Shown: positions 1 through 20,708 of the stretch, piece by piece | How positions within the stretch are numbered: the stretch's first letter is position 1 | Layout: each line of letters opens with the position of its first letter | Source: Amoeboaphelidium protococcarum X5 | Lineage: Eukaryota; Fungi; Aphelidiomycota | Direction of reading: 5' to 3' | DNA: 20,708 nucleotides | Assembly: GCA_023515725.1 (NCBI GenBank) | Contig: JALDTO010000316.1 | Coordinates: forward strand, 1 to 20,708 | Translations under genes and position numbers: made by a program | Notes under the pieces: model-generated | What the model saw: only the letters and a program-made list of their open reading frames with translations | Databases searched by the model: none | What the model was told of the DNA's origin: nothing

Positions 1-2
1 TT

Positions 3-3000
3 TCCAACTAGCCACTGTCTGCCCCGCCTATGAAGCTGGCACCGAAACCTGATATCAACTAGATTAAAATGGTTGTTAAAGAACAGTAGCAGTAATAATA
101 GCTGTAGTAGTAGTAGTAACAGCGATAGAGACAATCGATTGATTAAGGGACTTCTAATGAACAGCTCGACAAGTTGGCGTCAACGTATCAGTCAAAGGTG
201 TCGCTGAGTGATTAGCCTGGAACGATTGCTCCGAAATCTGACGCTGTAACTGGAAGTCATTAAGATTTATTGAGTCGCGCTTATGGAGCTGGTAAGATTG
301 GCGCAGGTCAATCAAAGACCACCACGTTTGGATTCCCAAAGTCTTCTGTTTAGAAAATTGCAGAGAGATTTGAAGAGTCATCGCCGTCATCAAATAATCT
401 AAGCACGTCCAACAATTCTTTTTCGCTTCGCAAGTCGGCAGATAATCTAGCTCGTGGTATTGAAAAGGTTATTCATGGTGCATAGGACACTAAGGCTAAG
501 CCAGTTGTTGCTGCGAATGGGAACTCTAGTGTTCACGATAAGAAGTCCTAACTAAACACGTTGAATGTGGCAGCTCTTAGTCCGGTCGATAATCCGGACG
601 ATAAATCACCAGGTGCTAGAGCAAGACGTAAGTCTTTCTTACTTATGCAGCAGCAGGAGTAGTAGGAGAGTAAAGATGTTGTCGCTGAAGGGAATAATGG
701 TAAGAAGCCATCATTGACTAGATCTAAGGCGGTGAATAATAAGAAGAGAAACTCAACTTCCAGACGCGCGGAGACTAATCTGGCCATGGCTTCTTATGGT
801 CGACGTAAACTCAGTACATCCATAACTCAGATTGGGCAGTCATTGAAGTAATAGAGCGGTCCTGTAGATAGAGTTCAGGGACTGTATAGATTGTACAGAA
901 TTATAGCGATGATTGCGGATGAAATTTGCATGGTGTACGATAGTTGGTCTTATGCTGTGACTGATCTATATAAACTGATTCTGCATGATAAGCCGAATGT
1001 GGACCGTGATTCTTCGAATAATGGTTCAGAAGAGTTTCCCTTTGATTATTGCATGATTGTGGTTAAGGATTTTCTTTCCGCTGCTAATGAGATTGCAGTC
1101 ACTCTTGGCGAGAATCCCAATAATGATGTGAAAGCTCTGAAGCGTGCTATCATTGATGCTGAAGCATGTCTCAAATAGGATCAGATTTTGGATAAGATTC
1201 CCGCTAAGGACCGTGAGAATGAAGCTAAAAAGAGTGCTCAGAAGGCAAGAAAAGCCTGCACTGGTGTTATCAGTGCATCGCTATCGTGTATCGCAGCTTT
1301 TTTGAAGTCGGGCTAGATGCTGCCTATTCTTAGTGTTGCCGGCTGGAAGATTGAAGCTGTGAGTCTTTTGGCTATGCCTGCCTGGCTCCAATTGTATGGG
1401 ATGGAAAGTCATGAGTTGGACAAGGAGAAGGCGCTGGATTTTGATGAAGGCTCTCTGAGAGAACATTTTCATGATCGCTTGGTGCGTAGTTAAAGCTTAT
1501 TTGGTAAAGTGAAGAATGAGGTGTTTCTCAATGCTAAGCCTCAGTATATCATAAGCAAATCTATGAGCTCAATGCTTAACTCGTCGCGTAACAGACACTT
1601 TTCTAGTCAGAGCAAGATGGATATTAATGAGGATGGAGTGAATTTGTATCCTATTGAGTATTTCGATGTTGATGCTCTAGCTTATAGATGTTACTTTCAA
1701 GGCACTGATCACCGTAATTATATCGGTATGACTGAGAGATTTGGTGAGGTTGCTATTAGTGTGAAGAGGGAGTTGCTTGTCAAGTAGGACGATTCACAAC
1801 AGTCTCCTCTTACGTAGTTTGACCAGAAGCTAAATGGCAACGATTTTACCGCGACTTCGGGGTAAGGTAGCTATTACTTTAGAGTTCTCTTTCGCTGCAA
1901 GAATTATCTTGGACAGTTGACGCATCTGCTTATTCCTGAATCTGATCTACCGACTGCGTCACGTCTGAATATATTCGGCAGTAAGAAGGATGATGACCAG
2001 AAAGAGAAGGGTGCGTCAGAGCGAATGTACAAGGCTCTCTTTTCCATGATACATCCCAAGTTGGATATGTCTAAACTGCGCCGATTTGATGTTGATATGG
2101 ATTCGTATGATGATAGATGTTAGAAGCTTGAGAAGGCGCTTGTGTAGTTGGATGAGCATAAAACTGCATTTAATTACAAGTTTGGTCTGCTGTATGTTGT
2201 CGATGGTTAGTCTAATGAAAGTGAATGGTTCAACAACGTCAAGGTCTCCGATTCATATCTTTCTTTTTGTAATATACTGGGAGAGACCATAAGTTTGAAA
2301 GGACATCAAGGTTTTGCCGGTGGTTTGGACACTAGAAATGGCAATACTGGAGAAAAGTCTATTTACACCAAGTGGAGATTCAATCCTGTTGGACAGGCTC
2401 CTCTTCCGTTACTCGGCGATGGTGAAGAGCTGTTTAACTGCGAAGATGATATCACCTTCGAAATCATGTATCATGTGAGCACTCTTTTGCCGTTCACTCC
2501 CGGTGATGAGTAATAGATTTAGAGGAAGCGTCATATTGGTAATGATTTAGTGTCGCTCGTGTTCCTAGAGTCTTCTTAAGGGGACAATGCATCTGCGAAC
2601 GATTGGTTTGTTAAAACTCCATTCGATCCCAAGTAGATCAAGAGTCAATTTCTTCATGTGTACATTGTGGTGTAAGAAGTGAAAGTTGATCCTAGTATTG
2701 TACAAGTTTTGAAGCCTGGCCTATCCAGTGATAGTTTGAATTGTGTTGGATATCGCGTGTATGCAACGTCTAATATTGAGGTCCCTAATTACTAGCCTTC
2801 TCTATGTGATCCTCCTGTCTATCTGATTTAGAATGATGATGACAAGAAACAGTTTGGTGACTTCCTCATAGCCAAGTTGATCAGTGCTGAAAATGCAGCT
2901 TTTGAGGCATCCAAATTCAAGACCTTGCACAATAGAACATACACTGGTTTGATGGAACAGCTTCTGCGCGATTTTAATGATGAAGTCAAAGGCAAAATCT

Positions 3001-4274
3001 CTGCTAGGCCCTCTATGCGTAAAAACTCAGTTATGGAGGCATCTACTGTGTCTAGTAGTGCGACCAAAGACTCTCTGCAAGGAAAGAAGTCTGTGTCAAT
3101 TGCAGATTCACAGGAGGATGGCGGACAAGTTGCTGCCAGTAAAAGGTAAAGCCTGATTAGAGACAAGGAGGAGCAGAACTCTGCCGATGTTAAAGAGTAG
3201 TAGTCACCTTCTGGTAATATTGGGCTTTTCGGTCGTCATTTCAGTAGTGTTCGTAAGAGCGCTGCCGTCATGCCATAGGAAGAAGCATCGAAGAAGTCTG
3301 GCAATTAGATTGCTGAGGCTGGTGCTGATTTAGCGTCCGGTGAGCAGAATAAAGGATCCGTGTTACAGCCTTAAATCACAGTTGATGCTATTGATGACGA
3401 TATTAAGGCGGTATCTGTAGCCAAAGATGAACAGAAGACGTTTGTACCGGTCATGTTGAAAATCAATGATCAGACTCCTGCCACTTCTTACGGATCTGAT
3501 ATTAATATTGTCTCCAATGGCTAAGAGGTATCTGATATATCCGTTTAAGAAGCAGATGCCGGTCAATCACCTGATCAATAAAGCGTTGCCACCACTCGTG
3601 TTAGTTTATCTAGTGACAAAATTGAGAGTAATGCACACTCTAATGAGACTCTGGAGAAAGCTAGTCCATCAAGTGTCAGGGTCAATTCTACCTAGACGTC
3701 GACTCAAGAAATAAAGAATTCTGGTTTAGCGGAAGATGTTGATGACTTGTAGCAATGGCATTCTGAGAGAGTTCGCACTTAAAGCTCACCTGCCATGCTT
3801 CGTCTGCGTCCAAGAATTGATAGCGGTAAGAATCGTTTGTCTTCAACTCGTCTTGCTGACAGCGATGAAGAGGATGATGAAGAAGATGCAAAACTTAAGA
3901 AGAGGGAGAACACGTAAAGTTTTCTAGATTTTTTGAATAGCGGCCCACCTGAGGAGCTGTTAAACGTTGGTAATGCCACTAATGCACAGGCTACAAAATC
4001 CAGAAATAGTTTACTGAGAGCTTTCAAAAAGAAATCAGAAGATAACACTGACTCTGGCTTGTCACCGTAGCATTCTCGAAAATCGTAGAGCTCGTCTTAT
4101 GTTGCACTGCCTGGTTCTGCAGGTCGATCTGCCAACCATCTTCCTAAAGTTTCTCCTGTGTCATAACCAGGATCAAGTGTAGTAAATACCGAGGGAGATG
4201 TTTCGAATCAAGAAGTTGGACTTGAAGATATACTGGGTCTCGACCCGTCGGTTGAATTGTCGTATAAATCTTGA
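3..4274 (+). CDS. Rap/Ran-GAP domain protein (Rap1GAP-like), 5' end outside window, >1400 aa
   Basis: One frame joins track ORFs 891, 1509, 1917, 2295 and 2877 when TAA/TAG=Gln and ends at TGA 4272-4274. RapGAP motifs YKFGLLYV, LKGHQGFAGGLD, FEIMYHVSTLLPF, QQIQRKRHIGNDLV (Asn thumb) and IKSQFLHVYIVV lie at about 2170-2670. The flanks are long and low-complexity. Confidence 0.93.
84..122 (+). repeat. Poly-Gln tract of mixed CAG/TAG/TAA codons
   Basis: In frame with the RapGAP: cag tag cag taa taa tag ctg tag tag tag tag taa cag. Confidence 0.9.
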
Positions 4275-4319
4275 GAGATGATTGGTGATTTATAGATTAT
4301 CGAATTTAAAAATATTTTG

Positions 4320-4516
4320 TCGATTGGCCAGCTTTAAACGCTGATTTTCATTCTTGATTGGCTGTCTTTTTGCGCCACCTGAATTTTTTTGTTGCTACGA
4401 TTGTAAACACTCCTCATTTGTATTCGTTTTCTTTTTCGCCTAGATTTCGGCCGATTGGGCTTTTTACAAGTGCATGATTGCATTGGCCACCGCCACCTGA
4501 GCCGATACTATAATAA
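4320..4516 (+). promoter_or_regulatory. Promoter-like cluster: four ATTGG (CCAAT-box) motifs, two CGCCACCTGA motifs and a TATA-like tataataa
   Basis: gattggcc ~4322, gattggct ~4357, gattgggc ~4453, cattggcc ~4481; cgccacctga at ~4374 and 4491; tataataa ~4509. It lies between two convergent gene 3' ends. Confidence 0.5.
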
Positions 4517-4539
4517 TATTCTAATCTCTTGCTGATGTA

Positions 4540-4876
4540 GTCAAACTACAACTTATCAGTAATTAACGCCACTGCTGTTTAGTATGAAGTGGTCTTATTT
4601 ATTGATTTGTTGTAGTTTGCGTGAACATCATTGCTTTTGTGCTGCTGCTTGCCTTTTACTTCTTCTGGACTGTTTTTATCTTAACCGACAGCCAAAATGC
4701 AAAACGCTGCTACTCTTTTCCGGCTTTATAAATGAGTCAGAAAGGGGGTCGCATTTCCCAATGTATACGGCACAAAGCTTAAATACTATTAATGCTGATT
4801 GATAGTCTGTAGTGTATTTGCACACACAACCCCGTTTAATCAAAGACGTTGTCAAGGCGTTTATTGATGGACACTT
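4540..4876 (+). ncRNA. Putative structured ncRNA with box H/ACA-like layout
   Basis: Perfect 11-bp stem 4542-4552/4609-4619; ANANNA at 4625-4630; stem 4633-4644/4768-4778; hairpin 4781-4819; ANANNA at 4824-4829; hairpin ~4839-4868 followed by ACA at 4871-4873. Family not recognised. Confidence 0.4.
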
Positions 4877-4977
4877 CACAGTCGGTCAGAATATTACAAT
4901 TGCTTTTAAACACGTCTATTTTTATATTAAATCATCTTCAAAGTAAATCATCAATCGTTTATACTACTCGAATCGGC

Positions 4978-5832
4978 TCATCTGAATCCAAAAACGGTGG
5001 CATTACCCGTTGAACCCGTGTTGAAAATATCTGAGGCACCTCCAATCGGCTTACCGCTAATCTTACTTCTGACAATCGCAACCACTATTGTAGTAATTAT
5101 CGCAATAATGACTAGCAGCACCATTGCCAGAATGACTTTATCTGTGGCCATGCGTCTCAAAAAGATTCGGATCTACTTATCGGCTCTTGTCAGATTCGAT
5201 TCAATCAGATCGACATTTTGATCAATCGTCTCAAGCTGGACAGTTTACTCTTTCAGCACCTCGTTCGTCTTTGTTCCCACATCAATGGTGTGCTATAAAA
5301 CTTGTTTAGTCCTCTCAGTCGACTACTTGGACTCTTTCTAGACATTGGATGCGTGATCTACTAGCTCCTTCGCTGTCATTTAATCAGCATTTCGCGTTGG
5401 CTTATTGAACAGATCATCTCGCTCTGCAGAGGTCATCGCCCAACTGAGATCGTCATTCAACTTGGTGATTTCTTGATCAAACGTTCTAGCTTTCTCTTCC
5501 CATGGCTTTGCAGACTCACGACTCAGCTCTCTCAGTTCAACGTTAAAGGATTTCAACACTTGCCTGGCTCTGTTGATTCGATTTTTGAGATATTCGCATT
5601 TCTACACAAGATTTGTTTCAATATGACAAAATACGAATATACAGAGGGAATCCAGCAATAATAGCTCTTACCTCTACTTTGGCTTTGCCTTGCAATTTGG
5701 GTACAGCCACAGTCAATGTGTTTCTAATCTCGCCAATGATGTCGGTCAGCTATTCGTCAAAATCTCTAATCTCTACATGGATTACTTTATCATTGTGAAT
5801 GGAACAGAAATTTAATACGTACCGTCAGACAT
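4978..5832 (-). CDS. Qb-SNARE, NPSN (novel plant SNARE)/Vti1-like, 244 aa, 3 exons (5832-5823, 5772-5672, 5601-4978)
   Basis: Spliced code-6 translation MSDEIRDFDEQL...VLKEQTVQLETIDQNVDLIESNLTRADKQIRIFLRRMATDKVILAMVLLVIIAII has an N-terminal helical bundle, a SNARE heptad with central Q (a TAA codon), an NPSN-type ATDK motif and a C-terminal TM helix. GT-AG introns 5822-5773 (50 nt) and 5671-5602 (70 nt) keep the frame. Confidence 0.85.
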
Positions 5833-6226
5833 TATGGATGACAATCGAGTATCGTGCTGTAACTAGAACTATTATTTGGGTGTAAAGTACTGGCTGGATT
5901 AAAGCAAAAATTTAAAAGATGTTGTTGGATCAGGCAGAGTATCATGCCATCTCCACCTTGCCTACCGGCAACCAGCTTAACAAACAACACCGTATCTACC
6001 AACGCTTGTACTTTTCACATCTTCCCTCTCTCTCCCTCTAATGTAGAATGAAGTTTTCAAGAGAGTCTCTGTTGAACATGTAAACGTTAGGAATCAAAAC
6101 AGATAATTGTTACAACCTCATTAGAACTAATCAAAGCCTGTGATCAATTTGAAGAACGGATGACGCGACAAGGTTTAAAAATATTGATCACCTGCAATGA
6201 ACAGTATCGATATTACACTGAATATT

Positions 6227-7321
6227 TCATTCTTCTTTCTTGTTACTTAGTTATAACTAAAGACTTGATCTCTTCATGCTTACGTCCTTTACCGTCAAAC
6301 CTCGCGCGCGCATTCGATTGACATCAGCATTGTTCTTCATAAAGAACCCGCTAATCTCCGCCAACAAATTCCAATCTAAAACTTTCAGCAATAACTTCAT
6401 ACCAATAGAAAAGTAACCTTGATCGTAGATTACACACTTGCCAGCGGATTTGAAAATGATATCTGCAATCGTTGACGGAGCCAATGCAGTCCACTTGAAA
6501 GCAGTGATTAACGATACATCTTTGGCATTGTCGTAAAAGTTGGTGCGAATAGGTGACGGATGTACGCAGATCACGTCAATATTGGTATCTGACACTTAAA
6601 GTTCTACAGACAGCGCGGCAGCGAAACTGGTCATCAACGTCTTTGTACATCCATATATGCTAGATATAGGACACGGCAGAAAGCCAGCTGATGAAGAGGT
6701 GAAGGAAATCAGACCACGCTTCCCATCGCTCATCACTGGCAGTTTGATCATTGTCTAAAGAACGCGGTGAGTTATGGCTATCATTGCCGAAGCATTGCAG
6801 TTTACATTGTTCATATGCTTCTCCAGCGGTATCTGTGAAAACAATCCCGGCACAATGTATCCCGCATTATTGAAAAGCATTCGAACTTCCCCACCAGCCA
6901 GCGCAACTTCAGTCATTGCCTCATCAATAGGATCCAAGTAGGACTTTGGATCAGTGGCACCAAGATCTAATGCGATTTTCTTAAATTCAACTTGAGGAAA
7001 TCTGGAAGTGATCTCAAGGAAACTTTTGTCAAAGATGGCATCAGGCAGAGCAATCATTATGACATTGATGTTTTACTGAGCTAGCTTTTCAGCTATTGCC
7101 TTGCCAATACCAGAAGATGCACCCGTGACTATGGCCCAGCACTTGGCGCCCTCGGAAGTCTTGTACATTTGACGCAGATCTTGATCTTTATAGAGCCACT
7201 GCACAAAGTTCATACCCAAGTATAGAGAGATCGACAGGTAACCAACAAGGAAGCATGTCAACACTAGCCAAGACGGAGCGAACCATGTCGTTATGTCTAA
7301 CAAAGTCTTTGCACTCAACAT
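6227..7321 (-). CDS. Short-chain dehydrogenase/reductase, 3-ketoacyl-CoA reductase/17beta-HSD12-like, 364 aa
   Basis: Three track ORFs fall in one frame with TAA/TAG=Gln. It has an N-terminal TM segment, WAIVTGASSGIG, LFNNAG, FTSS and catalytic YGCTK (YxxxK). TGA at 6229-6227. Confidence 0.9.
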
Positions 7322-7499
7322 CTTACGCAATAATACTTTGACACTTAGAAGATAGAGAGATCAAAGTTAGTTGTAAGAAGCGAAATGAACTCGTGCAGTG
7401 TCGCGTGAGAAATAACAGTGATGGCGCCACTAAACATCAACGCCACAATGCCAAGTTATCCAAAACAATTAGTTCATGACTTTATTAGTTCATAAAATG

Positions 7500-8940
7500 T
7501 CAAAATATCAGGCTAGAAGTTTTATGAATCTTGTTAGGCGGGTTAGATACAGGATCAAGTTGGTCTGGAGGAGAGTTATGGTCCCTGGAGCGGAATCGTC
7601 CAAGTCGCTTCTTATCGAATCTCTTCAACCAGTTTATAGTGTCTTCATTGGGAACTACTAAAGATCCCATGAAAATGCCAATAGATAGAGCCAACGCCAG
7701 TTCTATGAATGTCAGCGACATCTGAATACCACCCGTGTCGTCTGTCTGACTGAAGTAGGTGAAGAAGGACGTGACTGCCAGTGATCCGGGGACAAGCATC
7801 ACCAAACCAGAAAGCACGTACAGAATAGGTGGAGTTGCAGAGTATCTGGCATAAAGATTGGACATAACGGCCAACACAAAGGCTGAGCTCATAGATGAGA
7901 AAGACATTCCCAATTTCAGAACTGAATCTGATAAAAACCCAGTAATGTAACCCAACGCCGAGCATGCAACCATAGGCAACAACTAAGTTCTATGAGAATT
8001 CATCGACAAACTGAATGATGTTGCTGCCATGACGAACAACAGTGGATAAAATGCCTTATATACGCCACGATCAGCAGAGCATACTGACATTTACATCGCC
8101 TCCAGTTTAGTGACGCCTATTATACTAGCAAACAATTTGGTGGCCACGTCAAGACCAAATCCAATCGAAGCACTTATCACTATGCCATAGAACAATCTAA
8201 CTGTTCCGGACACGTAATTCTTTGTGATGATTTCAACGATCGACAAGGTGATAGTTACACCTTTAAGAGAATTAATAAAAGCACTAAACGCCACGGCTTT
8301 GAAGCATAAAGGAGTTATCCAGTAGTGAACAAAACGCGTAATCAGAGCTGCCAGAAAGCCAGAGAAGCATTCATTCAAACGATTATATGCTGACAGGCGA
8401 CTTCCAAACAGGTTTATTCCAAATATTATGGCAGCAAGTAATGTTGTCACAAGGACATCTGTCCAATTTCCACCGAAAAACAGACCACAGCACCCGGCAG
8501 AGCTCACACTATTGAATAGCAACTGAACAGGCCTAGAGTACAATGGACTAGCCGCCCTAATCTCATTAAGAGTGGTCGCTGCATCTTCAACTGCTAATTA
8601 ACTAAACATCTTGGCATACTGGCTTCTATTGTCGCTATCCCCCGACTTGTGATTAGGATCCTCCAAGTTGAGTGGCTATAGAGGGATATCTTTCGAGCGT
8701 CCAGGAAGCATTGGTTGCATCAACTGCTGTTATTTGGCCTTTTGTTTGTAATAGAATCCTTGTCCATACGCGGCGAGGTCCAGTATCTTTCTCCTTAGCA
8801 TGGGCCCTCCAATGCTGGCACCAGATGCTACAGATGGGTGCCGGTACAGAGATTTTATTGAGGCACTGTCTAACTTTGGCGTCTCTACAACATCTCTACC
8901 GGCCAGGTCTGTGATATCGGCAGTTTCCAGAGCCTAAACT
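7500..8940 (-). pseudogene. ThrE/Prm10-family multi-pass membrane protein, 5'-truncated at 8940
   Basis: Open frame from 8940 to TGA at 7502-7500 with AVEDAATTLNEIRAASPLY, FFGGNW, EIITKNYVSGTVRL, SNLYAR and MLVPGSLA. The N-terminal part of the ThrE domain is absent and the frame runs directly into rDNA-derived sequence. Confidence 0.8.
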
Positions 8941-8993
8941 TTGTGACATTGTTGATGTTGAATTGTGTGACAAATCCTTAGAACGGGCGAGCT
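8941..8993. repeat. Direct repeat, copy 1 (copy 2 at 20654-20708)
   Basis: ttgtgacattgttgatgttgaattgtg(tg)tgacaaatccttagaacgggcgagct is identical in both copies except for one extra TG in copy 2. Confidence 0.97.
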
Positions 8994-9398
8994 TAATCTC
9001 AGCAGATCGTAGCAACAAGGCTACTCTACTGCTTACAATACTCGGTTCACGTAAAGTCGTCTGCAATGGATCTACTAGATTTCCTGGTTTTGTGAATTGT
9101 TGTTATGAGACTGAGATTGGCAAAGAATCTTGCACAATCTGTGGCAGACTCGCAAACATGACTTGGACCACATAGGTGGCTATTGCTGTCAATGACAGAA
9201 AATCATTAAAATGAAGCCTCTGCACTCGCTAGCACGGATTCCGACTTAGAGGCGTTCAGCCGTAATCCAACGGATGATAGCTTCGCGTCAGTATAGCTGG
9301 TCAGCTAAACGCAAATGCCATGGATCCGAAACAACGGTTCCTCTCGTACTGAGTTGTATTACTATGGAGAGACTCTGTAATCGTATACTACTACTCAT

Positions 9399-9453
<55 letters not shown>

Positions 9454-9498
9454 ATTAGTGGGTGAACAATCCAACGCTTGGCGAATTCTGCTTCGCCG

Positions 9499-9534
<36 letters not shown>

Positions 9535-9572
9535 GCGTCGCTTTGAACGCTCTGCCGCCACAAGCCAGTTAT
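8970..9572 (-). rRNA. 3'-terminal ~600-nt fragment of eukaryotic 28S (LSU) rRNA
   Basis: Reverse complements of conserved LSU segments: gcttaatctcagcagatcgt (near 3' end), gttcctctcgtact (sarcin-ricin loop, 9337-9350), agggtaaaactaacctgtctcacgacggtctaaacccagctcacgttccc and gccacaagccagttat. The expected continuation ccctgtggtaac is missing. Confidence 0.97.
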
Positions 9573-9748
9573 TACTACTTATATCTTATTCGGCACTTCG
9601 TGACCCCTTGCAACAAAATTGATTCGCTGATGGAGTCCCCTTAATGTTTGATTGGCCGATATTACAACTCGTGAACCCAACACCTTTTCTCCTCCAATCA
9701 AAAACGCAATACCATATCTAAAAGTTGATCGATAGCTTAAATCTGAAT

Positions 9749-10135
9749 ATGTCGTTAAAACAAGGCTGCTACTTTAAGTATCTTGGCACAATTGAGTCTC
9801 TGCAAACCAAGCCCACTGCCGACGGAACCAAACAGTACACAATGATAAAAATGCGCGTGAATGGGAAGACCAAAACCATTATGGACTTTGACAATACCAT
9901 ATGCAATTATGACGTGCAGATTGGTTCTTATTCTCGTATATCAGGTGAGTTAGAGTTGACCTATGACAGTGTTAAGAAGAGCAATAATTGCATCTTCAAA
10001 GTCCAGGATTACAAGGCATTGACGTCCAAGGAAGAGCTAGAGCTGATTGCAAAGTTAAGTGTTAAGGATCTAGTGAAGGCTGCAGTTAATCGTAGCAAGA
10101 GATAGAGAGAGCCAAGTCCAACACCATCATAGTGA
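9749..10135 (+). CDS. Small putative OB-fold / single-stranded DNA-binding protein, 128 aa
   Basis: MSLKQGCYFKYLGTIESLQTKPTADGTKQYTMIKMRVNGKTKTIMDFDN...VQIGSYSRISGELEL has a beta-strand pattern resembling SSB/RPA OB folds, judged by eye only. It reads through TAG 10103 to TGA 10133-10135. CCAAT motifs lie upstream (~9650, ~9694). Confidence 0.6.
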
Positions 10136-10470
10136 TCATCTGTGACAAGAGATAAAGAAAGCCATTTTCCACACCATCAGAATGACTTTCAAGTAACCAC
10201 GAACAATAATAATTCAGTTTAATACATGCATTTTTCATTTATCTTTTGTTGCAATCGATATCAATTTCAAAGCAAACTTTTTCAGATTTCGACCGTATAT
10301 TTTAAATAGTAATAGGTTAATTAGGTTGTACAAATTCGTTGTATAAATGTTTTAAAATTACGGTTAAGGTAAGTGTATAAAATTTTATCATCTGCTGAAA
10401 CAGTGGCGCATTGCTTCATCCAAAAAAAGTGAAAAAATATCACGTCGTTGATTAGAAATTGATCATCACT

Positions 10471-10908
10471 ATGGTGGCGCCTTCTGCTTTGCATGATATA
10501 AAACTGTTGGAATTATTATTGGCATTTGAGATTCGCGGAACTACTGAAGATATTCTGTATTTGGCATATACTGTCAAATATGAATTCTTCAGTCATCTGT
10601 TATATCTCAACAGTTTTTGCCATGTCCCATTGTAACTAAATCTAGCAGCGATCGATCACGCTGCTAGTGATATTGATTAGTTTATATAATGGGCCATGGT
10701 TCCTGAAATTGCAGTATATCTATTCCAATTTTGGAATGCAAGACTTCATGTATATGATTGCAATGATGTCTTGGATATCATCAGAGGAATGGATTCTGAA
10801 TTCTACCAAACGGGTGTTCATTTGGTAGATTTTGTTAGAAGGACCATTGATCCTGATGAGTTAAATGTTGTTGCATCGAATCTAGGATTGCCAAAATTAG
10901 ATATATGA
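10471..10908 (+). CDS. Hypothetical protein, 145 aa
   Basis: ATG 10471 to TGA 10906-10908 in code 6 (MVAPSALHDIKLLELLLAFEIRG...NLGLPKLDI), flanked by AT-rich spacers. No motif recognised. Confidence 0.6.
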
Positions 10909-11170
10909 AAGATTTAATTTTTGATTATTAATATACGTGTTTTTCAATTCACCTTATGTTTTTAGTTTTAATCAATTGTAACATTTCAAATGAATAGTGT
11001 CACTTACTGTGATAGTGTGCCTATTATATATTTTATTTCAACTTGATTGTAACATTGATTGCGCGTGATCACCACGCATGACTTGTATGAACCCATCAAT
11101 CGTTTACTGTGCATTTTCTTCATCAACTTTATTGTACTATCAAAATTATCATCAATTTAATATTAATATA

Positions 11171-13426
11171 ATGGCTGATATCGAAGAAATAATTGCATAA
11201 TTGCCCTTTCCTTTAGGAGAACAAGTTGTAAACCGATAAGGTGTACGTCCGGGTGCTCCGGTCCCATACGTAAGGATAAATGAAAAGCTAAATGAAAATG
11301 CTGATATAATATGTTGTGTCTGCTCTGCACGATTGTATGATGAAGAAGCCCATATTAGAACTGATGGTATCATAAATAACGCCCTCTTCAATGCTCTGTA
11401 GTAGTAGCCAACCCGCTCAGATGACAACCGTTATCTAGCCTGCAACGTTTGCTCGAAATTAGCTGTCAATAAATTCCCGTAACCATTCATGCCCTATCGC
11501 GATCTGTAATAATTCATTGATTAAGGTCTTGCTGTTGGTGTTGTTAAAGTGATAACTACTTACTAAAGAACTCACTCAGTTATTCGTAATGTTCCAGGAT
11601 TTCTAAAATTCAAAGGGGATGTCAAGCTGGTGTTTAATGATCAATTGATACTAGCTATTCGTGCTCTACGTAATAATCAATTTGTGTTTAACGTGGAAGA
11701 CTAATATGTGGCACTGGCACAATGCTTATTGGAGAAATAGCATTTTGCATAATCTCTAAACTCCCCCGTTGGTCGTGCTTTGCTTGATGGAGAACCCGTG
11801 ACTATCCGCGATGTTGCTAAAGATAATCTACTCACTCTATGGGCTTACCCACAATACTTTAATGATATAAGTTAATTGCCTGATGTCACCAGTGAATCAA
11901 CTATCCTTTAATGGCTGCGTCTCCGTCTGTTCGGTCCATGCTTTCCATATCGAGATGATTCAGTCTTTCAATATTATTTGTTCACTGAAATGGAATTGCA
12001 ACGCGCGTATAGGCATTTTCATTATCGTGCCAAGAACCCTGATGAGCATAATCGCCCATTGCGGAACTAGGACGTGTTGATGAATGTCGGTTAGCGATTA
12101 TCGTATAATCAATTAACCACATGTCCAGTGCCATCCAGTTTCCGACTTAGTGCATCGTTCAAAGTCAGCAAGTACCTCGACTTGTTAGCCGTTGCCAAAG
12201 ATTTCGGTGAGCCTACCTTATTCCTCACCTTCTCCTCAAATATGTTTGGATGGCCTTCCTTGACTGAGTTTATCCGTCGTGTAAAGGGAAGAAATTCACC
12301 TCCAAACAATGAGGCAATTCTATACGCCAGATACTTTAAACGGAGATTTTAAATCTTTTATAATGAGTATATTTTAAAAGTATTCGCCAGAAAAGTAGGT
12401 GGTATAGATTGGTCTTATTAAGTCGTGGAAACTGGTAAAAATGGTTTCTTGCATGTGCATTTAATCATGAAAACTGGCGACTCCATTTAAAGAATGATTG
12501 ACAAAAATATCATTAGGAGTTCTGCACATGGCGCGTCTAGAGTGGTATTTGATAAACTACATAAATATCAAATCCACAAATGCGGTGATTACTGTCTGGT
12601 CGATGGAAAATGTCGGTTTGATATACCTCGACAACGGCAATAGGAAACCGAACTAGTTGGGGATCACGTCAAATACAAGATGAGATGCGCGTTTGATATC
12701 CGTCTGGTGAATTGCATTGATGAAATGCTTTTGTGTTGGGATGGGTAGATGAACGCGTAGTATGTGCCTAGTGGGAAAATTGGACAATACGTTACTAAAT
12801 ATTGTTCCAAGTCTGATTCTTCTGTTGAAAATCCAGCCTTTGTAGTTGCTAACAATGTTGATACATAGTTACGATAATCATTGGCTGTGTATTTTCGACA
12901 AAGAACAGTTCATACCACATATCTAACGTATATTATGCTTGGCTATGGGACTGATTGTTGCACTCGGGATGTTATATATATCCCTCCGATTTTACAGTCT
13001 TACCAGCATGGTATACTGAGACCGTTACATGTCCTAGAGTAACTTGAGGATGATAGTGATTAAATATTTTACTACAGTAAAGTTGTAAAATATTTAAAAA
13101 GGCCACCACAATACCATCACTTATCATACCCTGAGTTCTATAGGCGCGTGATAGTTACCGAACACCAAGATGGACATACAACCTACCGGGAGAGAAGACG
13201 ACCAGTTGCAGTGCGCTCGTATTACTTTTCAGTCTCTGCAGGGGAAAAGTTTTACGAGTAAGCACTTTTATGGACAACTTGTCCAATTTATTAGGAAGCT
13301 GGCTATCCGGGAAATGACTATCTCTCAAATATGCATCCGAATAATAGGATGGCATTCCTGGAGAGTCATAGAAATCCTGATGTTGTACGCATTTTACGCG
13401 CTCATCATAGACTGACTCAAGATTGA
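11171..13426 (+). CDS. Helitron-type HUH (Y2) Rep transposase without fused helicase, 751 aa
   Basis: Uninterrupted code-6 ORF with N-terminal CCVC...CNVC Zn site, motif 1 GEPTLFLTFSS, motif 2 VVETGKNGFLHVHLI (HVH at 12452-12460), HKCGDYC...CRFDIP, motif 3 YVTKYCSK (from 12788) and C-terminal YLKRP...LSYPEFY. Confidence 0.92.
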
Positions 13427-13454
13427 ACACAACTTAATATAAAACACGTATAAT

Positions 13455-14150
13455 TCATAATTCTATTTCTTTTTCTTCATAATACTAATAGACGCGATTG
13501 TCATTGCACAACAGACTTTATCCGTCAAACTATCCTAGCAGGTGTACATTTTAATGGTTGGGAACTCTTGCAATCGCCGAATATGCCAACCCATGACCAA
13601 ACAATGGAGACATGAGAATGTTTAGCCCAGGAAGAGTTTGTGACTACACTTTATGTATTGTGGCCGCATAACCAGGACTGATAGCAAACTGAATTCTTGT
13701 AAATCCACTTGGTGCATCTGTTCCAATAAACCTTGGAATTTCAACAATTTATCCGGGCCATGCATCAAATTCAATGAAAACACTAGTTCCATCGCGCGAT
13801 ATTCGATGCAAGTACCCAAACATCCCATTTTTAATGTGTGACAATGCTCCCAAATGATTAGCAACAATCATAATCCTCATACCTTCAACCAATAAAACAT
13901 TGGCCTTCAGATCATAAGTACCACCACGTACTCTTCGCGCGTCATCGCGTTCCAGATACTCCCAATCTTGAATATCAATCGCCGGTATGTTGACAGCATA
14001 TCTATTGGGGTCGTTCAGCAGAACAGCCAATCTGAAATTATTTATTTCGTCACACTACTGCACTGTAGGAGCAAGCACCATAAAGCGTTGGTCGTAGTTA
14101 ACAGACCGCATTTGCTGCAACATAGCAAAACAACGATCATTAATCATTCG
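13455..14150 (-). CDS. Pif1-family (SF1B) helicase, 3' part (gene split by copia insertion)
   Basis: VLAPTVQQCDEINN, GMRIMIVAN...IKNGMFG, RIQFAISPGYAATIHKVQSQTL and FGHGLAYSAIARV. TGA at 13457-13455. Confidence 0.92.
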
Positions 14151-14270
14151 TGTTAGGTTGTGACGAAACACGTACAACGTCAGTGAAAAATGATCAAACT
14201 ACTTCTTCAAGTGAAGTAGAAATAACAATAATTGGTTATTATTTATTTTCTACTTATTACGTTTTTAACA
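14151..14270 (+). repeat. 5' LTR (120 bp)
   Basis: 119/120 identical to the 3' LTR (acgtacAacg vs acgtacGacg). Confidence 0.97.
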
Positions 14271-14281
14271 TTTCTACTTCA
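14271..14281 (+). promoter_or_regulatory. Non-tRNA primer-binding site, complementary to LTR 14212-14222
   Basis: TTTCTACTTCA follows the LTR directly and is the exact reverse complement of TGAAGTAGAAA inside the LTR. There is no TGG. Confidence 0.6.
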
Positions 14282-14318
14282 ATTTATCATATCATATCAG
14301 GTTCTATCAAAAGCTAAT

Positions 14319-17300
14319 ATGGACAGCAGCAAGGACGATGCGTATCATGGAACGATATTTTGCGGCCCTAATTTCACTGCCTGGCACAAGTCGTTACTCA
14401 CTTAAGCCAGAGAGAAGAAGGTGGACGCGGTGCTGGGTAAGAAGGTGTACAAAGAGATCAAGAAGCTTGGCTCTGTTGAAGACTATTATGCAAATCTCTT
14501 GTCTAATCTGGATAGCGCCAGCCAAACTCGCGTCGTCTCCGTCGGAACGGACGCGTCAGCCGTTAATCAGGCAGCTCCCGATAGTAGTGCATAGAGAGGT
14601 GACGTTGGAAAGTAAGGTGGAGCTAGAAAGGATGTAGTCCCGTCCTCTGTACAGTCCGTATCTTCAGGTGGATCTTCAAGTCTGGATAAGCATAAGGTGA
14701 TTTCGGAAGTTTTGGGAATGAACAGCAAAGCTCTGGCAATTATCGAGAATTCCATCGAACCTCAGCTGAGATATATCATCATCAAGTGCAAGTACGCGTA
14801 TGAAGCAGTATAAGCAGTGGAGGCATATTGGAACGCTAAGTCTCCTAAGCACTCTGGCCTGCTTGCTGAACAATTGGAAAGTCTCACCTTCCAACAGTTC
14901 AATCATTCAGTGAAACTTCTATTTGCGATGAGAACGATTGTTGAGGAGATGTAGAAGTGTGGAGATACTTCTATTTCGGAGTAAAAACTAGCCTAGAAGT
15001 TCTTAGATAAGCTACCGTAGGGCCCAACGTATGGCGATATCCGCGCGTTGGACAACGTTTCCACTTACTTAAAGAAGCCTCTGACTACCGCGGATCTGAT
15101 GGACACTCTGACTAGTATTGAGCTATAGCGCCAGATACAAGCCTTACGTTAATCTGGTGGTGAGTCTACTGAATCTGTGTAAGCTAATGCAATGGTTAAG
15201 TAAGGAGCTTCGTTTAAAGGTAATCGCAAGCAGTAATTCTCTACAGGCGGGAGTAGTAGCAAGTACTGCACTAACTGCAAGAAAGCGAACCATACTGCTG
15301 AAGAATGCTACTGGCCTGGTGGAGGTGCTGAGCACAAACGTCCTGCTCACTTAATACCTAGAGACAAAGATTAAAGTCATGGCATAAAGAAAGTCAAGTT
15401 CAGTGCTAATGTTGCTCAAAGTGCTGAAGACGCTAACTTTGTGTCTCTAGTGACTCACGTCATGACCCTCAATGCGGCTATTGACTCTACTGCTCTAGAC
15501 AACCAGAATGTCTGGTTAAGTGATGGAGGTTGCAACAAATTTGTTACGTGTAGAAAAGACTGGTTGTACAATTACCAAGATTGTTCTGCTGTTTGCACCA
15601 CTATTGATAATAGCACTTTGGTTACCGTGGTAGGTAGAGGCAGCATATAGTTTGAAATGCGTAATGACCAAGGTAAACTAACCATTGCCACTGTTGAGGA
15701 CGTCTTGTACTCTCCTAGCTTCTCCTTTAATTTATTCCCTGTTGGGCCGGTTGATGACAAGAAAATGTATGTGGTATTTGGGGAAGGCATGAAGAAAATC
15801 TACCAAAATGGAGAATGTATTGCAACTGGTTAGAAAATGAGTTCTGGACGTTTTGATGGATTGTATGTTATGGACATCAAGGTGATCTGGCCCAAGTCTC
15901 ATCAATCCGAAGGCAGTGATCCGAAGCGTCACAAGTCTGATGATCAAAGTAAGAGCGAGGCAGATGTAGTCAGTCTGTCAGCAAGTATCAATGCTAAGAC
16001 CATCCACGAACGTCTCGGACATCCTAGCAAGGGAATCGTGAAGAAAATGGTGTGACTAGATATGTTAGGATAAGTTAGCCATGACATCGACTTTGATTAA
16101 ATAGATCACTGTGATCCCTGTCTGCAAGCGAAAGCTACTCGCGCTCATTTTTCTAAACGGAAAGATTCTCGGTGGGACAAGAAAGAGATGCCTCTACGGA
16201 CACCTCGTGTTCTTTATATGCTTCATGCGGATCTCATCGGTCCCATTGGCATTCAAACACCTCAGAAGTAATCCTACATCTTGACTATAGTAGATGACTA
16301 CTCAGGCTATGCATGGGCGGAATTGTTGTACAGCAAAGATTAAGCATCCTCGGCCATTTAAGTGCTTAACGCTAGAATGAACGTGGAAACTGGTGAGAAG
16401 ATCAACACTCTAAAATGCGACTAAGGTACTGAGTTTGTGAACTAAGATCTTAAAGGATTCTGTCGTGATTATGGAATCCTTTTAGATATGGTGCCTAGAT
16501 ATACACCTTAGTTGAACGGAGTAGCTGAAAGATATAATCGTCGGATTGTAGAAGGTGTATGCAGTATGTTACTATCCAGTGGGTTGCCCAGAAGATATTG
16601 GGGCCTTGCAGTGCAGGCTTATGTATATGTGGCGAATAGAGTTTTAACAAGTGCTCGTAATGCCGCCGGATAACTGTAAATAACACCGTACGAAGTATAC
16701 CATGGGAGCTAACCGCGCTACAATCATTTGAGAATTTGGGGCTGTCCCGTTACGTACTTCGTACCTAAAGAAGCAAGAGCTGATAAATTCAAATTCTCTA
16801 GTCGTACTGCTAAAGGTCATTTCATTGGGTATAGACCAAGCGGTTATCAGATTCTCACTGCTTAAAATTCATTACTCGATGTTCCTTTTGATGAAGTCGT
16901 CTTTCACGAGGTTGCACGTTAGACTTATGGTGCCTAGGAGTTTGACTTGATGTATGAATCGTTCTATCCTCCAGATCTCTCAGACACATAGTCGGAATCT
17001 GGTTTGATGTTGGGCGAAAGCAGCACCTCTTGTGACTTGACATAGAATCCAGATTAATCCCGTTCTTCATTCGGCGAAAGCTCTGATAATATGCGCTCCA
17101 CTTTGGGCGAAAGACATGTAGATTAGACCAATGTGCATGACAATGATTAACATACGCCAAATCCTCAGATGGAGGTGGGCGGAAGTGATGATGTTGATGT
17201 TATGCCTACCGGTTTGGTAGATGATGTTTATGTGAACACTTAAAGTGATGTGTCTTAAGTGAATGTGTAAGTATCGGGCTCGAATGTGCCGTAAGAGAAT

Positions 17301-19349
17301 GTGAATGTGAATGTTCAAGATCTTAATGTGAATGCGAATGATTAAGAGCCTAATGTGAATGTGAATGATTAAGAGCCTAATGTGAATGTGAGGGATGATG
17401 CAGACGCGACGAATGTGTAAGCTATATAACAGAGATCTGCGTGTCTTAAAGTTGGTGGTAAGCGAATCAGTCGTCGCCTGCGTAATATCAGTGCAGAGTC
17501 TAATCCTTTAGAGCAAAGTGAAGAGCAAGAGGATGAGGAAGACGCTCTGGTGAATAAGAGACTCAAACGCCTGGTTGAAGAACTCAAAATCGACATGAAC
17601 ACACGGGCTGATATCAAGGCACTCTCGTCTCAGGTGAAGATAAACGAACTAATTGATGACTTTGTTCAATGCTATCTCTCTAAGCTTGAGGTTGAAGAGA
17701 TGCCGTATGATGTGACTTGTCTATTCAATGAAATCTATTGTGGCTCAGACATACCTGTGACTCCTAAGACCGTTGCAGAGGCTATGTTACTTAAAGAATG
17801 GCCGCAGTGGAAGGCTGCGATGGAGGATGAGTTGAGGAGTCTTCTTAAACATGGGACTTGGAAAAGGTCCATTCTGCCATAAGGCTTTAAAGCGCTCCCT
17901 TGCAAATGGGTTTTTAAGATCAAGCTTGATTCCAGTGGGTAGGTGGAGAGATTCAAGGCTCGATTAGTTATTTAAGGATTCCGTCAAGTGAAGGATGTTG
18001 ATTACACCGAGACATTTGCTCCGGTGGCTAAGTTTAACACGATTAGGATGGTAATTGCTATAGCTGCAAAGTATGATATGATAATCCATTAAATGGATGT
18101 AAATACTGCGTTTTTAAACGGAATACTGAATGAGGAGATTTACATGAAAGGGCCTGTGGGTACCGAATTTGAAGGTCAGATACTGCGTCTACTGAGAAGT
18201 CTTTATGGGCTCAAATAAGCACCGAAATGCTGGAACAATACAATTCATTAGTTTCTTGTCGAGATTGGTTTCAAGAGAAGCCATGCCGACAATTGTCTTT
18301 ACATCAGGCGCAAGCACGGTAGATTATTTATGATAGTGCTCTATGTCGATGATATTCTTTTAATTACTTAGCGCTAATCAGATATTGATGCCGTCATAGC
18401 ACAGCTGGCTCAGCGTTTTGACATGAAAGATTTAGGTCCTGCTGAGCATATTGTTGGGATTCGGATCAAGAGGTCAATGCCTTAGAAGATTATCTAATTA
18501 GATCAACGCACTTACCTGGAACGTGTTCTTACTCGCTTTGAAGCGGACAACTGTGTTGGAGTCTCAACACCCATGAGTCTTTAGGCGATTAACGTTGATG
18601 TTGATGATGGTTTCTTGGATGTTTCTTATAGAGCGTTGATTGGTTCATTGATGTATCTTATGGTGGGTACGCGTCCCGACATTGCATTCGTTGTTGGTTA
18701 CTTAAGTAAATATCTGTCGAATCCTAAGATGGAACACTACAGTATGGTCAGAAGGGTCCTGCGATACTTGGCTGGTAGTAAAGATCTTGTTTTGATTTTC
18801 GATGGGAAGAAAGATCTGCTTCCCATTGCTTATGCCGATGCAGACTTTGCTAACGATTAAGAGGGAAGGCGGTCTACCACCGGCTATGTAATTCAAATGT
18901 GTGGCGCTAGTATCTCTTGGAAGTCCAAGTTGTAAAGTGCAGTTGCGTTAAGTAGCACTGAAGCAGAGTACTATGCCGCTGCTGCTGTGTGTTAAGAGCT
19001 GTGCTGGTTTAGGGAGATTCTGAATGAAGTAGGGCTCGATATTGTGGTTGATGGGCTAAGGTTGTTAGCTGATGAAGAAACTGTTGATAGAGTGAAGGTT
19101 CATCCACTTAAAGTTATGGAAGACAACCAGAGTTGTATTGCCATTACAAAGAATCCGGAGAAGTTTAGCAGAACTAAGCATATCGAAGTTAAGTATCATT
19201 TTGTCAGGGAGTTAACTGAAAGCGGCCGCGTTATGTTTGAATATGTGAATACGTAGGAGCAGACTGCTGATGTTCTAACCAAGCCGCTGACTCCTACGCT
19301 ATTCCGAAGACATGTTGCCAGATTGGGTCTAGATTAAAGTCGCTGTTGA
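14319..19349 (+). CDS. Copia gag-pol polyprotein in a single frame (~1676 codons) with one internal TGA at 16053-16055
   Basis: CTNCKKANHTAEEC zinc knuckle; protease WLSDGG; integrase HERLGH..CDPC, LHADLIGP, IVDDYS, CDQGTEF, TPQLNGVAERYNR; RT KARLVIQG, HQMDVNTAFLNG, SLYGLKQAP, YVDD; RNase H YADADFA, STEAEY, EDNQS, RTKHIE, ADVLTK. Confidence 0.93.
17325..17390 (+). repeat. 27-bp in-frame tandem repeat (NVNxNDQEP, ~2.4 copies) in the IN-RT linker
   Basis: aatgtgaatgcgaatgattaagagcct aatgtgaatgtgaatgattaagagcct aatgtgaatgtg. Confidence 0.85.
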
Positions 19350-19375
19350 GTTGCACGTATATCCTCAGGCGAAAG

Positions 19376-19495
19376 TGTTAGGTTGTGACGAAACACGTAC
19401 GACGTCAGTGAAAAATGATCAAACTACTTCTTCAAGTGAAGTAGAAATAACAATAATTGGTTATTATTTATTTTCTACTTATTACGTTTTTAACA
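19376..19495 (+). repeat. 3' LTR (120 bp), preceded by a short atypical PPT (aggcgaaag)
   Basis: Direct repeat of 14151-14270. Confidence 0.97.
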
Positions 19496-19500
19496 ATTCG

Positions 19501-20106
19501 CCTTCTCAAAAACCTCAAAAAGTACATCATATCAGGATCATTACGATGTCTGATACTTTCCTTCATCTCTACCACAGCCAATCGCCTGAATGGAGCATAC
19601 ATGAAAATCCAACTTCCAGAAGGTGGAGCGCATTAGAAAAAGTCTCCAAAAAACACAACTTCAACGCCACCACAAAACGAATCAACTTGATCGAATAGAA
19701 CTCTCAACTTATTGTCCACAGCCATGATAAGTTCAGCCTACAGCATACTCACTTCATCGACAATCATCACAACATCCGCAGCTTGCGCGTCATCAGGAAG
19801 TCCAAGGTCTGATTTTGTTTGCACAGTGGAATGCCATACTTCTTCTCTTGTAATCGTTTGTCGTTTACTCAGACGAAACGTTGAATGTATTGTATGAGCG
19901 GCAACATTGATTGATGATATTCCAGTTGGAGCAACTAGCACGACATGTTTACCAATTGATTATGCATACGCCTAACATCTCTAAAGTAGAAATGATTTGC
20001 CAGTACCAGGTAGTCCAAGAACCACTTTACTCTCTGCATTTTCAAATACCCATTAAAAAGTAGGCCTCTACTCAACTGGATCTAACTAATTAAGAAATTA
20101 TTCCAT
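19501..20106 (-). CDS. Pif1-family helicase, 5' part; 433 aa when rejoined with 14150-13455
   Basis: ATG at 20106; Walker A GLPGTGKS, VAPTG, TIHS, Walker B IVDEVSM and GGVEVVFFGDFFQ. Removing the copia element and one TSD restores the frame (..FLRR|RMIND..). Confidence 0.92.
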
Positions 20107-20634
20107 ACTACAACTTCTAGATTATACTGATTATACTATATGAATCAGAGGTGCAATAAATGTAATTTTAAACTACCGAAAGAAGATATAGATCACTAAT
20201 CAATCTGGACTCAATCATGACTTCGCCAAGCACCACACATGCAACTGTCCAATGAGCTCTCTACGGAACGACGCGTCAGGCCACATTGTTCTGACCAATC
20301 AGGATCAGCTACCAACAAAATTCTCGATTCCAATATGCGCGTACACTAACACTATCTCATACTTTCATCTCGGTTTAAATACATGTATTGTTATAGCTAC
20401 CGTTTTAAATACGCGCAAATCCAATGATTGTCATGCACGCCTACGATTTGCTGTTTTCAAGTGTCGGCGTGTATTTCTGTCTTTACAGCAATGTACACAC
20501 GTGACATGCCCGCTCGCCAGGTTATACTGTAATTGAAGCATGCACTTTGTGGAGCAAGGCGCATGTTTACACTATACACCCCTACAGCCATACATATGAC
20601 AATGGTTGAAATTGCTTCGTGTGTTGAAGCGGAA

Positions 20635-20679
20635 ACAATATCAACAGCAACAATTGTGACATTGTTGATGTTGAATTGT
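20635..20679 (-). other. Imperfect hairpin just downstream of the 28S 3' end (3'-ETS-like stem-loop)
   Basis: acaat-a-tcaaca-g-caacaat [tgtgac] attgttg-a-tgttga-attgt. Confidence 0.7.
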
Positions 20680-20684
20680 GTGTG

Positions 20685-20708
20685 ACAAATCCTTAGAACG
20701 GGCGAGCT
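20685..20708 (-). rRNA. 3' end of a second 28S rRNA copy or fragment, running out of the window
   Basis: acaaatccttagaacgggcgagct is identical to 8970-8993. Confidence 0.85.

Follow-up and report, generated by a model that had tools for sequence, protein, structure and literature searches.

A Helitron-derived element with a split RepHel at one nucleotide of the 28S rRNA gene in Amoeboaphelidium protococcarum, resident in rDNA and apparently sparing its target

We analyzed a 20,708-nucleotide stretch of DNA from the algal parasite Amoeboaphelidium protococcarum (the window), which is the entire contig C314, ending at position 20708, of a 23.6-Mb genome in 346 contigs. The window holds a Helitron-derived element (E) that extends from about position 9573 to 20510, measures 5.6 kb without a nested copia retrotransposon, and lies between two copies of the 3' end of the 28S ribosomal RNA (rRNA) gene. 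E is of the Helitron kind, with a split RepHel; it resides in ribosomal DNA (rDNA) and apparently spares its target. The explanation that we prefer, with a probability of about one half (0.5), is that E represents an rDNA-specific Helitron variant that retains or regenerates the 28S 3' end; judging from the arrangement of the sequences, the mobile unit itself would carry this 28S 3' end.

To the left of E, Rfam identifies the single rRNA feature of the window, the 3' part of a eukaryotic large-subunit rRNA on the minus strand (8970/8972-9602). When 8941-9572 is compared with the intact 28S genes of contigs C233 and C162, 631 of 632 positions are identical (99.84%), including 30 nt beyond the 28S end. 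This segment consists of the start of intergenic spacer 1 (IGS1, the 3' external transcribed spacer), 30 nt past the 28S end (8941..8970, minus strand), and the displaced last ~600 nt of 28S (S-a; 8971..9572, minus strand), which runs up to the A of the A/T site in GGGA/TAAC. The 28S match breaks at GCCAGTTA/T: the intact gene goes on with CCCTTTGGTAAC, the window with TACTACTT. In the rRNA sense the site is GGGA/UAAC, in the central loop of domain V (the peptidyl-transferase-centre loop), and we take it, by our own count from the E. coli 23S sequence, to correspond to E. coli 23S A2448/U2449. The 28S of A. protococcarum reads tccctttggtaac at this point, not tccctgtggtaac, as an earlier sequence-only reading of the window had it.

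To the right of E, sensitive alignment places a second IGS1 segment of ~175 nt on the element side (I1'; ~20511..20683, minus strand), followed by a second 28S 3' end (S'; 20684..20708, minus strand) that is stopped by the contig end; 20654-20708 repeats 8941-8995 apart from one 2-nt indel. The claim of the sequence-only reading that a second 28S 3' end follows in the same orientation as the first is thus borne out, with 20511-20708 made up of spacer and 28S end, and its coordinates and its two figures for the repeat spacing (11,713 nt, or 6,363 nt minus copia) are correct. The two rDNA copies are unequal: the right one has ~175 nt of IGS1, whereas on the left only 30 nt of spacer follow the 28S end before an unrelated junction with a ThrE-family gene. 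The direct rDNA repeats that bracket the element come to ~0.8 kb (the last 600 nt of 28S plus ~175 nt of spacer). I1' is a diverged variant, 85-88% identical to the real IGS1 of the same genome, with a ~17-nt deletion that is absent from the host IGS1 copies and common to the window and two copies of the element from other sources (L025 and L026, described below). Read in the rRNA sense, the 5' part of 28S is followed by its 3' part, a spacer, E, the displaced 28S 3' part and another spacer. The rRNA gene on the upstream side of E is thus whole, and what has been displaced is just a spare 3' fragment.

The same 28S nucleotide is occupied a second time in this genome. Contig C21 (1,614 nt) reads 76 nt of 28S to GCCAGTTA, then 1,462-1,463 nt that match window 9573-11034 at 100%, then TCCCTTTGGTAAC...; its 28S flanks are 100% identical to intact 28S, which is otherwise whole. 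Written as GCCAGTTA / 1,463-nt insert / TCCCTTTGG, the contig shows no base gained or lost, as in an insertion between A and T, and a shift of the insertion point by one base, to T/C, fits equally. C21 thus appears to be a second, very recent insertion at this nucleotide. Its insert has the left end of E and terminates in the interval from ORF2 to Rep. Such a junction cannot come from recombination between repeats; an early-terminated rolling-circle event, or Rep-mediated excision of the rest, could presumably give rise to it. Two forms of the element stand at one 28S nucleotide in the genome, full in C314 and short in C21, while the L025 and L026 copies may share the ancestry of C314.

To identify E, the genetic code has to be considered. 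Read in the standard code, the region yields nothing but short open reading frames (ORFs), and the stops are nearly all TAA or TAG; even the copia insert, with its 100%-identical copies elsewhere in the genome, lacks a long ORF in this code. When TAA and TAG (TAR) are read as glutamine, copia yields ORFs of 622 and 1,097 codons, and the remaining window also opens. Because all element genes open with TAA/TAG as sense codons, they appear broken under the standard code only. We considered repeat-induced point mutation as the source of the TAA/TAG stops and rejected it: the transition/transversion ratio between copies is only 1.0-2.2, and the ORFs open with TAR read as Gln.

With this code, a Rep gene of 782 aa (11078..13426, plus strand) matches Pfam Helitron_like_N, and its motifs are intact: zinc-finger-like CxxC pairs, motif I (LFLTFSSN), the HUH motif (LHVHL) and the two-tyrosine motif (YVTKY). 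A Pif1-type helicase gene lies on the minus strand in two parts, the 5' part (19501..20106) with a Pfam PIF1 match, Walker A GTGKS and Walker B DEVS, and the 3' part (13455..14150) with the C-terminal half; once copia is removed, its ORF (20106 to 19501 plus 14150 to 13455) encodes 433 aa. Rep and helicase are convergent, with ~30 nt between their stop codons. The sequence-only reading had described a Rep/helicase/SSB-like module, in which Rep and helicase are now confirmed by Pfam; the 'SSB-like' assignment of the third protein, ORF1, which is without a Pfam match, is unconfirmed.

A library search with the stop-free Rep piece gave 16 matches, among which the best long ones are fused RepHel proteins. 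Rep aligns to residues 143-753 of the fused RepHel P0007 (E 7e-101; 32% identity over 633 aa), and the helicase aligns to residues 815-1219 of the same protein (E 7e-74; 33% identity over 415 aa). Since Rep and helicase match consecutive parts of P0007, E carries the two halves of a RepHel, parted exactly at the linker and with the helicase portion turned around; tentatively, this split would be the derived state. The Rep protein has the HUH motif and two catalytic tyrosines of Helitrons, with a weak match to Helraiser, and the helicase is Pif1-like, of the SF1B type, by Pfam PIF1 and both Walker motifs. What is missing is a single fused RepHel: the two genes are convergent in the window, in L025, in L026, in partial copies, and in a second family on contig C83 (L034, C83:1-3500), which has the same convergent Rep/helicase layout and 54% Rep identity. 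Canonical fused Helitrons are present in the same genome, on C179 and C207.

Compared with canonical Helitrons (Helraiser, PDB 7LCC), E thus shares the CxxC pairs, the HUH motif with two tyrosines and the Pif1-type helicase, as well as, judging from C21, an A/T insertion without target duplication; the closest relatives that turned up are fused RepHel proteins of compact size, 1,169-1,219 aa. Unlike canonical Helitrons, E has two convergent genes split at the linker and no TC or hairpin-CTRR ends, and it was seen intact in rDNA only, at one nucleotide, between 0.8-kb direct repeats of its target. The left end of E is TTACTAC, and the other end of the C21 insert is ...TATATATTTT. Among candidate ends that we tried, terminal inverted repeats of module A (the part of E that C21 holds) gave a score not above that of shuffles, and canonical hairpin-CTRR ends were found at none of the borders, the sole CTAG/T hairpin (10642-10667) sitting inside ORF2. 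Two other classes of insert were rejected as well. An intron at this position, whether group I, group II or spliceosomal, does not fit a 5' exon that ends in A and an insert that ends ...GTAA, with no GU/AG or GUGYG marks; a non-LTR element of the R type does not fit a coding content of Rep and helicase, and the scanned ORF pieces gave no reverse-transcriptase signal.

The arrangement in the window recurs elsewhere. A search with ORF1 led to a 2.24-Mb contig of a second A. protococcarum assembly, GCA_023515745.1 (locus L025), where the order is 5S, IGS1, 28S 3' 600 nt, E without copia, ~120-175 nt of IGS1, then 28S; this element is 96.7% identical to that of the window across 5.2 kb. A Joint Genome Institute (JGI) metagenome contig of 5,851 nt (L026) begins 109 nt ahead of the 28S/E junction, carries E at ~93% identity and closes with 86 nt of the second spacer and 28S end, and a second JGI metagenome contig (L027) carries the left junction. 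Since the 28S/E and E/spacer junctions recur in three independent sources, they are not a product of misassembly, which the sequence-only reading had named as a possible refutation. That repeats were simply misjoined at the rDNA is scarcely credible to us: the contig does end within rDNA, C21 is short, and the evidence consists of assemblies, but the same junctions stand in a separate, independent assembly from NCBI as well as in a pair of JGI metagenome contigs. Because the spacer segment next to E (I1) has the same ~17-nt deletion in all three sources, the E/I1 junction presumably arose once.

L025 also reveals what follows the second 28S 3' end, which continues unbroken through gccagtta and the A/T site into tccctttggtaac and more than 2.4 kb of 28S. 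The sequence-only reading had offered two proposals, either that E carries the 28S end so as to regenerate the gene on integration, or that it captured rDNA and continues head to tail, and it had suggested reading past the second 28S end to tell them apart. The complete 28S that stands after the element in L025 is the outcome assigned to the first proposal; carriage of the 28S end to regenerate the gene is favoured, short of being established, since the same structure could arise in other ways, as set out below.

Selection on the element genes was evaluated from pairwise dN/dS (the ratio of nonsynonymous to synonymous divergence) among three copies, those of the window, L025 and L026, with dS up to 0.5. 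The values are 0.10 for ORF1, 0.15-0.19 for ORF2c, 0.12-0.19 for Rep and 0.05-0.08 for the helicase: purifying selection acts on each of the four ORFs. L026 has both large genes intact, L025 has an intact helicase but a broken Rep, and the window has an intact Rep but a helicase broken by copia. Between the window and L025, identity is 98-100% in module A and Rep but only 82-93% in the helicase, and because this identity is mosaic, diverged copies of the element have recombined. Could it be the host that maintains these genes? A domesticated resident, whose Rep, helicase and small ORFs the host keeps for its rDNA (e.g., for rolling-circle amplification or repair) with no transposition, would account for the strong purifying selection and for the conserved position in three lineages. 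We nevertheless consider domestication very improbable, as the helicase is knocked out by copia here and Rep is broken in L025, so that neither is indispensable, and C21 and the dispersed fragments indicate mobility.

These fragments show how the element is distributed in the genome. Intact element genes were found solely in C314, that is, confined to rDNA. Fragments on C192 and C212 are truncated at both ends and 83-89% identical, with no rDNA near. On C211, a relic of E is separated by 4 kb from the edge of an rDNA array, and on C83 a piece of rDNA spacer at the start of the contig precedes the second family by ~0.4 kb; the first 81 nt of the C83 contig have 85% identity to the rDNA external spacer region. 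Because rDNA-adjacent DNA makes up, by rough estimate, well under 1% of the genome, it is unlikely that these two further relics came to lie beside rDNA by chance. We had considered C211 as a second locus at which rDNA follows the element, which proved only partly true: the intervening helicase is of another family, with 29% identity.

The observed map can arise by three routes: insertion at the 28S site of a mobile unit of E, I1 and S (S being the last 600 nt of 28S and I1 the ~175 nt of spacer), a crossover in S of a circle with the same content, and insertion of E followed by deletion. A single origin of the E/I1 junction is compatible with each of them. In the last of these, a Helitron-like element inserted once into 28S at the A/T site, a later deletion of ~11 kb joined the right side of the element to IGS1 of the next unit, and the product was inherited vertically near the edge of the array; the 'second 28S end' would then belong to the next normal rDNA unit, and the element would carry no rDNA. 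A single deletion yields the observed order, the window and L025 copies both assembled beside array or contig edges, and the spacer variant common to the three copies fits one ancestral junction; moreover, the IGS1 region is a recombination hot spot in yeast rDNA. However, an end-truncated, immobile relic should decay, yet dN/dS is 0.05-0.19 at the divergence given above, and C21 has 100%-identical element DNA newly at the same nucleotide. Diverged copies have recombined, and further rDNA edges also bear relics of this element group. Because an element left without its right end fits poorly with purifying selection and with C21, we rank this route second and hold it to be somewhat unlikely.

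A separate rDNA rearrangement forms the left border in the window. Positions 1..8940 are host flank outside the element, a homeologue or paralogue of C156:43830-52766 with 92-94% identity, in which a ThrE-family gene (7503 to 8940, minus strand) has lost its 5' part at 8940/8941. Joined to C164 from position 77 on, window 1-8940 is collinear with a part of C156 that has no interruption and reads AACTT/CATTAG, the empty site. The rDNA-containing insert in C314 and C164 begins (T)TGTGACATT and ends ...CAACAAT(T): both of its ends are the same IGS1 point, with 1-2 nt of shared T (8940/8941; C164:76/77). This breakpoint, X, lies in the loop of the hairpin CAACAAT-TGTGAC-ATTGTTG, 30 nt beyond the 28S end. 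A permuted insert of this kind looks like the signature of a circle or of a unit-length rolling-circle product, and the ThrE gene may thus offer a case of rDNA relocation. The 28S site and breakpoint X each lie in or beside a small stem-loop in single-stranded DNA, a setting that would suit an HUH nuclease and that proves nothing.

The ThrE insert bears on the other proposal of the sequence-only reading, namely that the element captured rDNA and lives as an episome or head-to-tail concatemer, or that a circle integrated through the 0.8-kb rDNA segment. One crossover in rDNA of a circle composed of element, spacer and 28S 3' end gives exactly the direct repeats that are observed, and the insert in the ThrE gene has one and the same IGS1 nucleotide, within a hairpin loop, at its start and its stop, both of which speak for this proposal. 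Against it, L025 enters 28S and not the element after the second 28S end, an element-to-element tandem junction is on no contig, with no tandem concatemers found, and C21 is unexplained by recombination. The continuation in L025 is thus not head to tail, and the proposal as a whole appears improbable.

In the explanation that we prefer, an rDNA-specific Helitron variant that retains or regenerates the 28S 3' end, Rep would nick single-stranded DNA at the 28S site sequence, and the mobile or persistent unit would consist of E, the following spacer and the 28S 3' end. Such a unit could be made if rolling-circle replication reads through until it meets another copy of the site; alternatively, it could exist as a circle that goes back into rDNA by recombination. 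In both routes, integration would leave a whole 28S. A bolder form of this explanation, which we offer tentatively and consider possible at most, is that E is an HUH transposon that uses the 28S peptidyl-transferase loop as both start and stop site and always carries a spare 28S 3' end plus terminator, and hence belongs to a self-repairing, rDNA-specific lineage of split-RepHel Helitrons; this Rep may also cut the IGS1 hairpin, and entire rDNA units could then travel as circles. If Rep does cut this hairpin, the rDNA insert of the ThrE gene, with its circular permutation, would be explained.

Several points weigh against an rDNA-specific mobile unit. A derived spacer variant is common to the three full copies, which may descend from one ancestral event and hence do not prove that the rDNA-carrying form integrated repeatedly, and C21 is a single short contig, present in one assembly only. 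Scans of metagenomes with the ORF1 protein and with the 28S/element junction gave no further copies, in a collection that may lack close relatives. The junctions are known from assembled contigs. The ends show no 5' TC, no hairpin-CTRR and no terminal inverted repeats. Finally, ordinary recombination could have made the IGS1 breakpoints, because the region is the yeast hot spot mentioned above.

It is instructive to compare E with known systems. The rDNA-specific mobile elements known to us are retrotransposons, one piggyBac family and introns. A literature search, whose coverage was incomplete, found no Helitron among rDNA-specific elements and no paper that ties Amoeboaphelidium to Helitrons. 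Like R1, R2, R4-R9 and Pokey, E sits in a multicopy gene, at a 28S position that is fixed and highly conserved, and has truncated copies at the same site; those elements use reverse transcription or a DDE transposase and interrupt 28S, whereas E has an HUH Rep and a helicase, and a complete 28S stands upstream of it. In the prophages and integrative elements of tRNA genes, the insert supplies the 3' end of the gene, which keeps the target whole, and the displaced 3' fragment marks the other border, as would be the case here if E carries the 28S end. However, these elements are bacterial and rely on tyrosine or serine integrases and short att sites, while E has a 0.8-kb duplication and an HUH nuclease and resides in a eukaryote.

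By analogy, E also resembles IS91/ISCR and IS200/IS605 in what appear to be one constant end, variable termination (C21 versus the full copy), a specific short target with no duplication, and possibly a strand-specific rolling-circle or single-strand logic; those bacterial elements lack a Pif1 helicase, and their size is far below that of E. The ThrE-gene insert, which is circularly permuted at one IGS1 point, resembles extrachromosomal rDNA circles and their reintegration, but such circles are not known to carry Rep and helicase.

What would such an element mean? A Helitron-type element in the rDNA niche would add a fourth mechanism to those of the known residents, and would be proof that strict site specificity is within reach of HUH rolling-circle elements in eukaryotes. 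That E apparently leaves a complete rRNA gene would explain how a DNA element persists at low cost in an essential gene family. The split into two selected, convergent genes bears on the origin and the necessity of the Rep-helicase fusion, and the permuted rDNA insert beside the element is a concrete case for movement of the rDNA locus. A nuclease that recognises an invariant 28S sequence could, in addition, serve as a safe-harbour targeting activity.

Module A (9573..11034, plus strand; 1,462-1,463 nt) carries the two small ORFs that precede Rep, ORF1 (9749-10135; 128 aa) and ORF2c (10471-10908; 145 aa). ORF1 is beta-rich and of no known family: Pfam gave no match, AlphaFold predicts six strands plus helices at a pLDDT of 43, and its Atlas neighbours (DUF961, SSB and DUF3127) are weak (≤0.90). 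Inside ORF2, 10642-10667 form a perfect palindrome with a 9-bp stem, CTAGCAGCG...CGCTGCTAG, followed by T. The 425 nt around this palindrome (10477-10901) recur on C155 (93%) and C146 (78%), and the C146 copy adjoins another Rep fragment. Upstream of the helicase gene lies a non-coding region (20107..20510, minus strand) that is hypervariable across lineages; within it, a block at ~20425-20480 is conserved, with a possible stem-loop.

The nested copia-type long terminal repeat (LTR) retrotransposon (14151..19495, plus strand; 5,345 nt) has LTRs of ~120-130 nt and a target duplication, ATTCG, at 14146-14150 and 19496-19500, and its insertion splits the helicase gene. It is missing from the element in the other sources, and three further copies in the genome, on C207, C164 and C253, are 100% identical to it; the insertion in the helicase gene is very young. 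Its long ORFs (14187-16052 and 16056-19346, with TAR read as Gln) are parted by one TGA, an arrangement that suggests gag-pol expression by stop read-through in an organism with TGA as its only stop. Within the copia coding region, 17298-17396 hold three 27-nt tandem repeats, with units AATGTGAATG....

In the host flank, the genes of the duplicated C156-like block are long only when TAR is read as Gln: one ORF at 3-4271 (plus strand) has 1,423 codons and is cut by the contig start, and another at 6230-7360 (minus strand) has 377 codons and a weak short-chain dehydrogenase match. Elsewhere in the genome, the main rDNA array (C233:154261-170151) is collapsed to ~1.2 units, each ~13.6 kb long, in which 5S and 28S lie on opposite strands; two features of this array, a 1,544-nt duplicate attached through one N and a gap of 219 N, look like scaffolding artefacts. 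At C192:918347-921293, a 5'-truncated 28S (the last ~2.9 kb) meets non-rDNA at the contig end and looks like another decayed rDNA edge.

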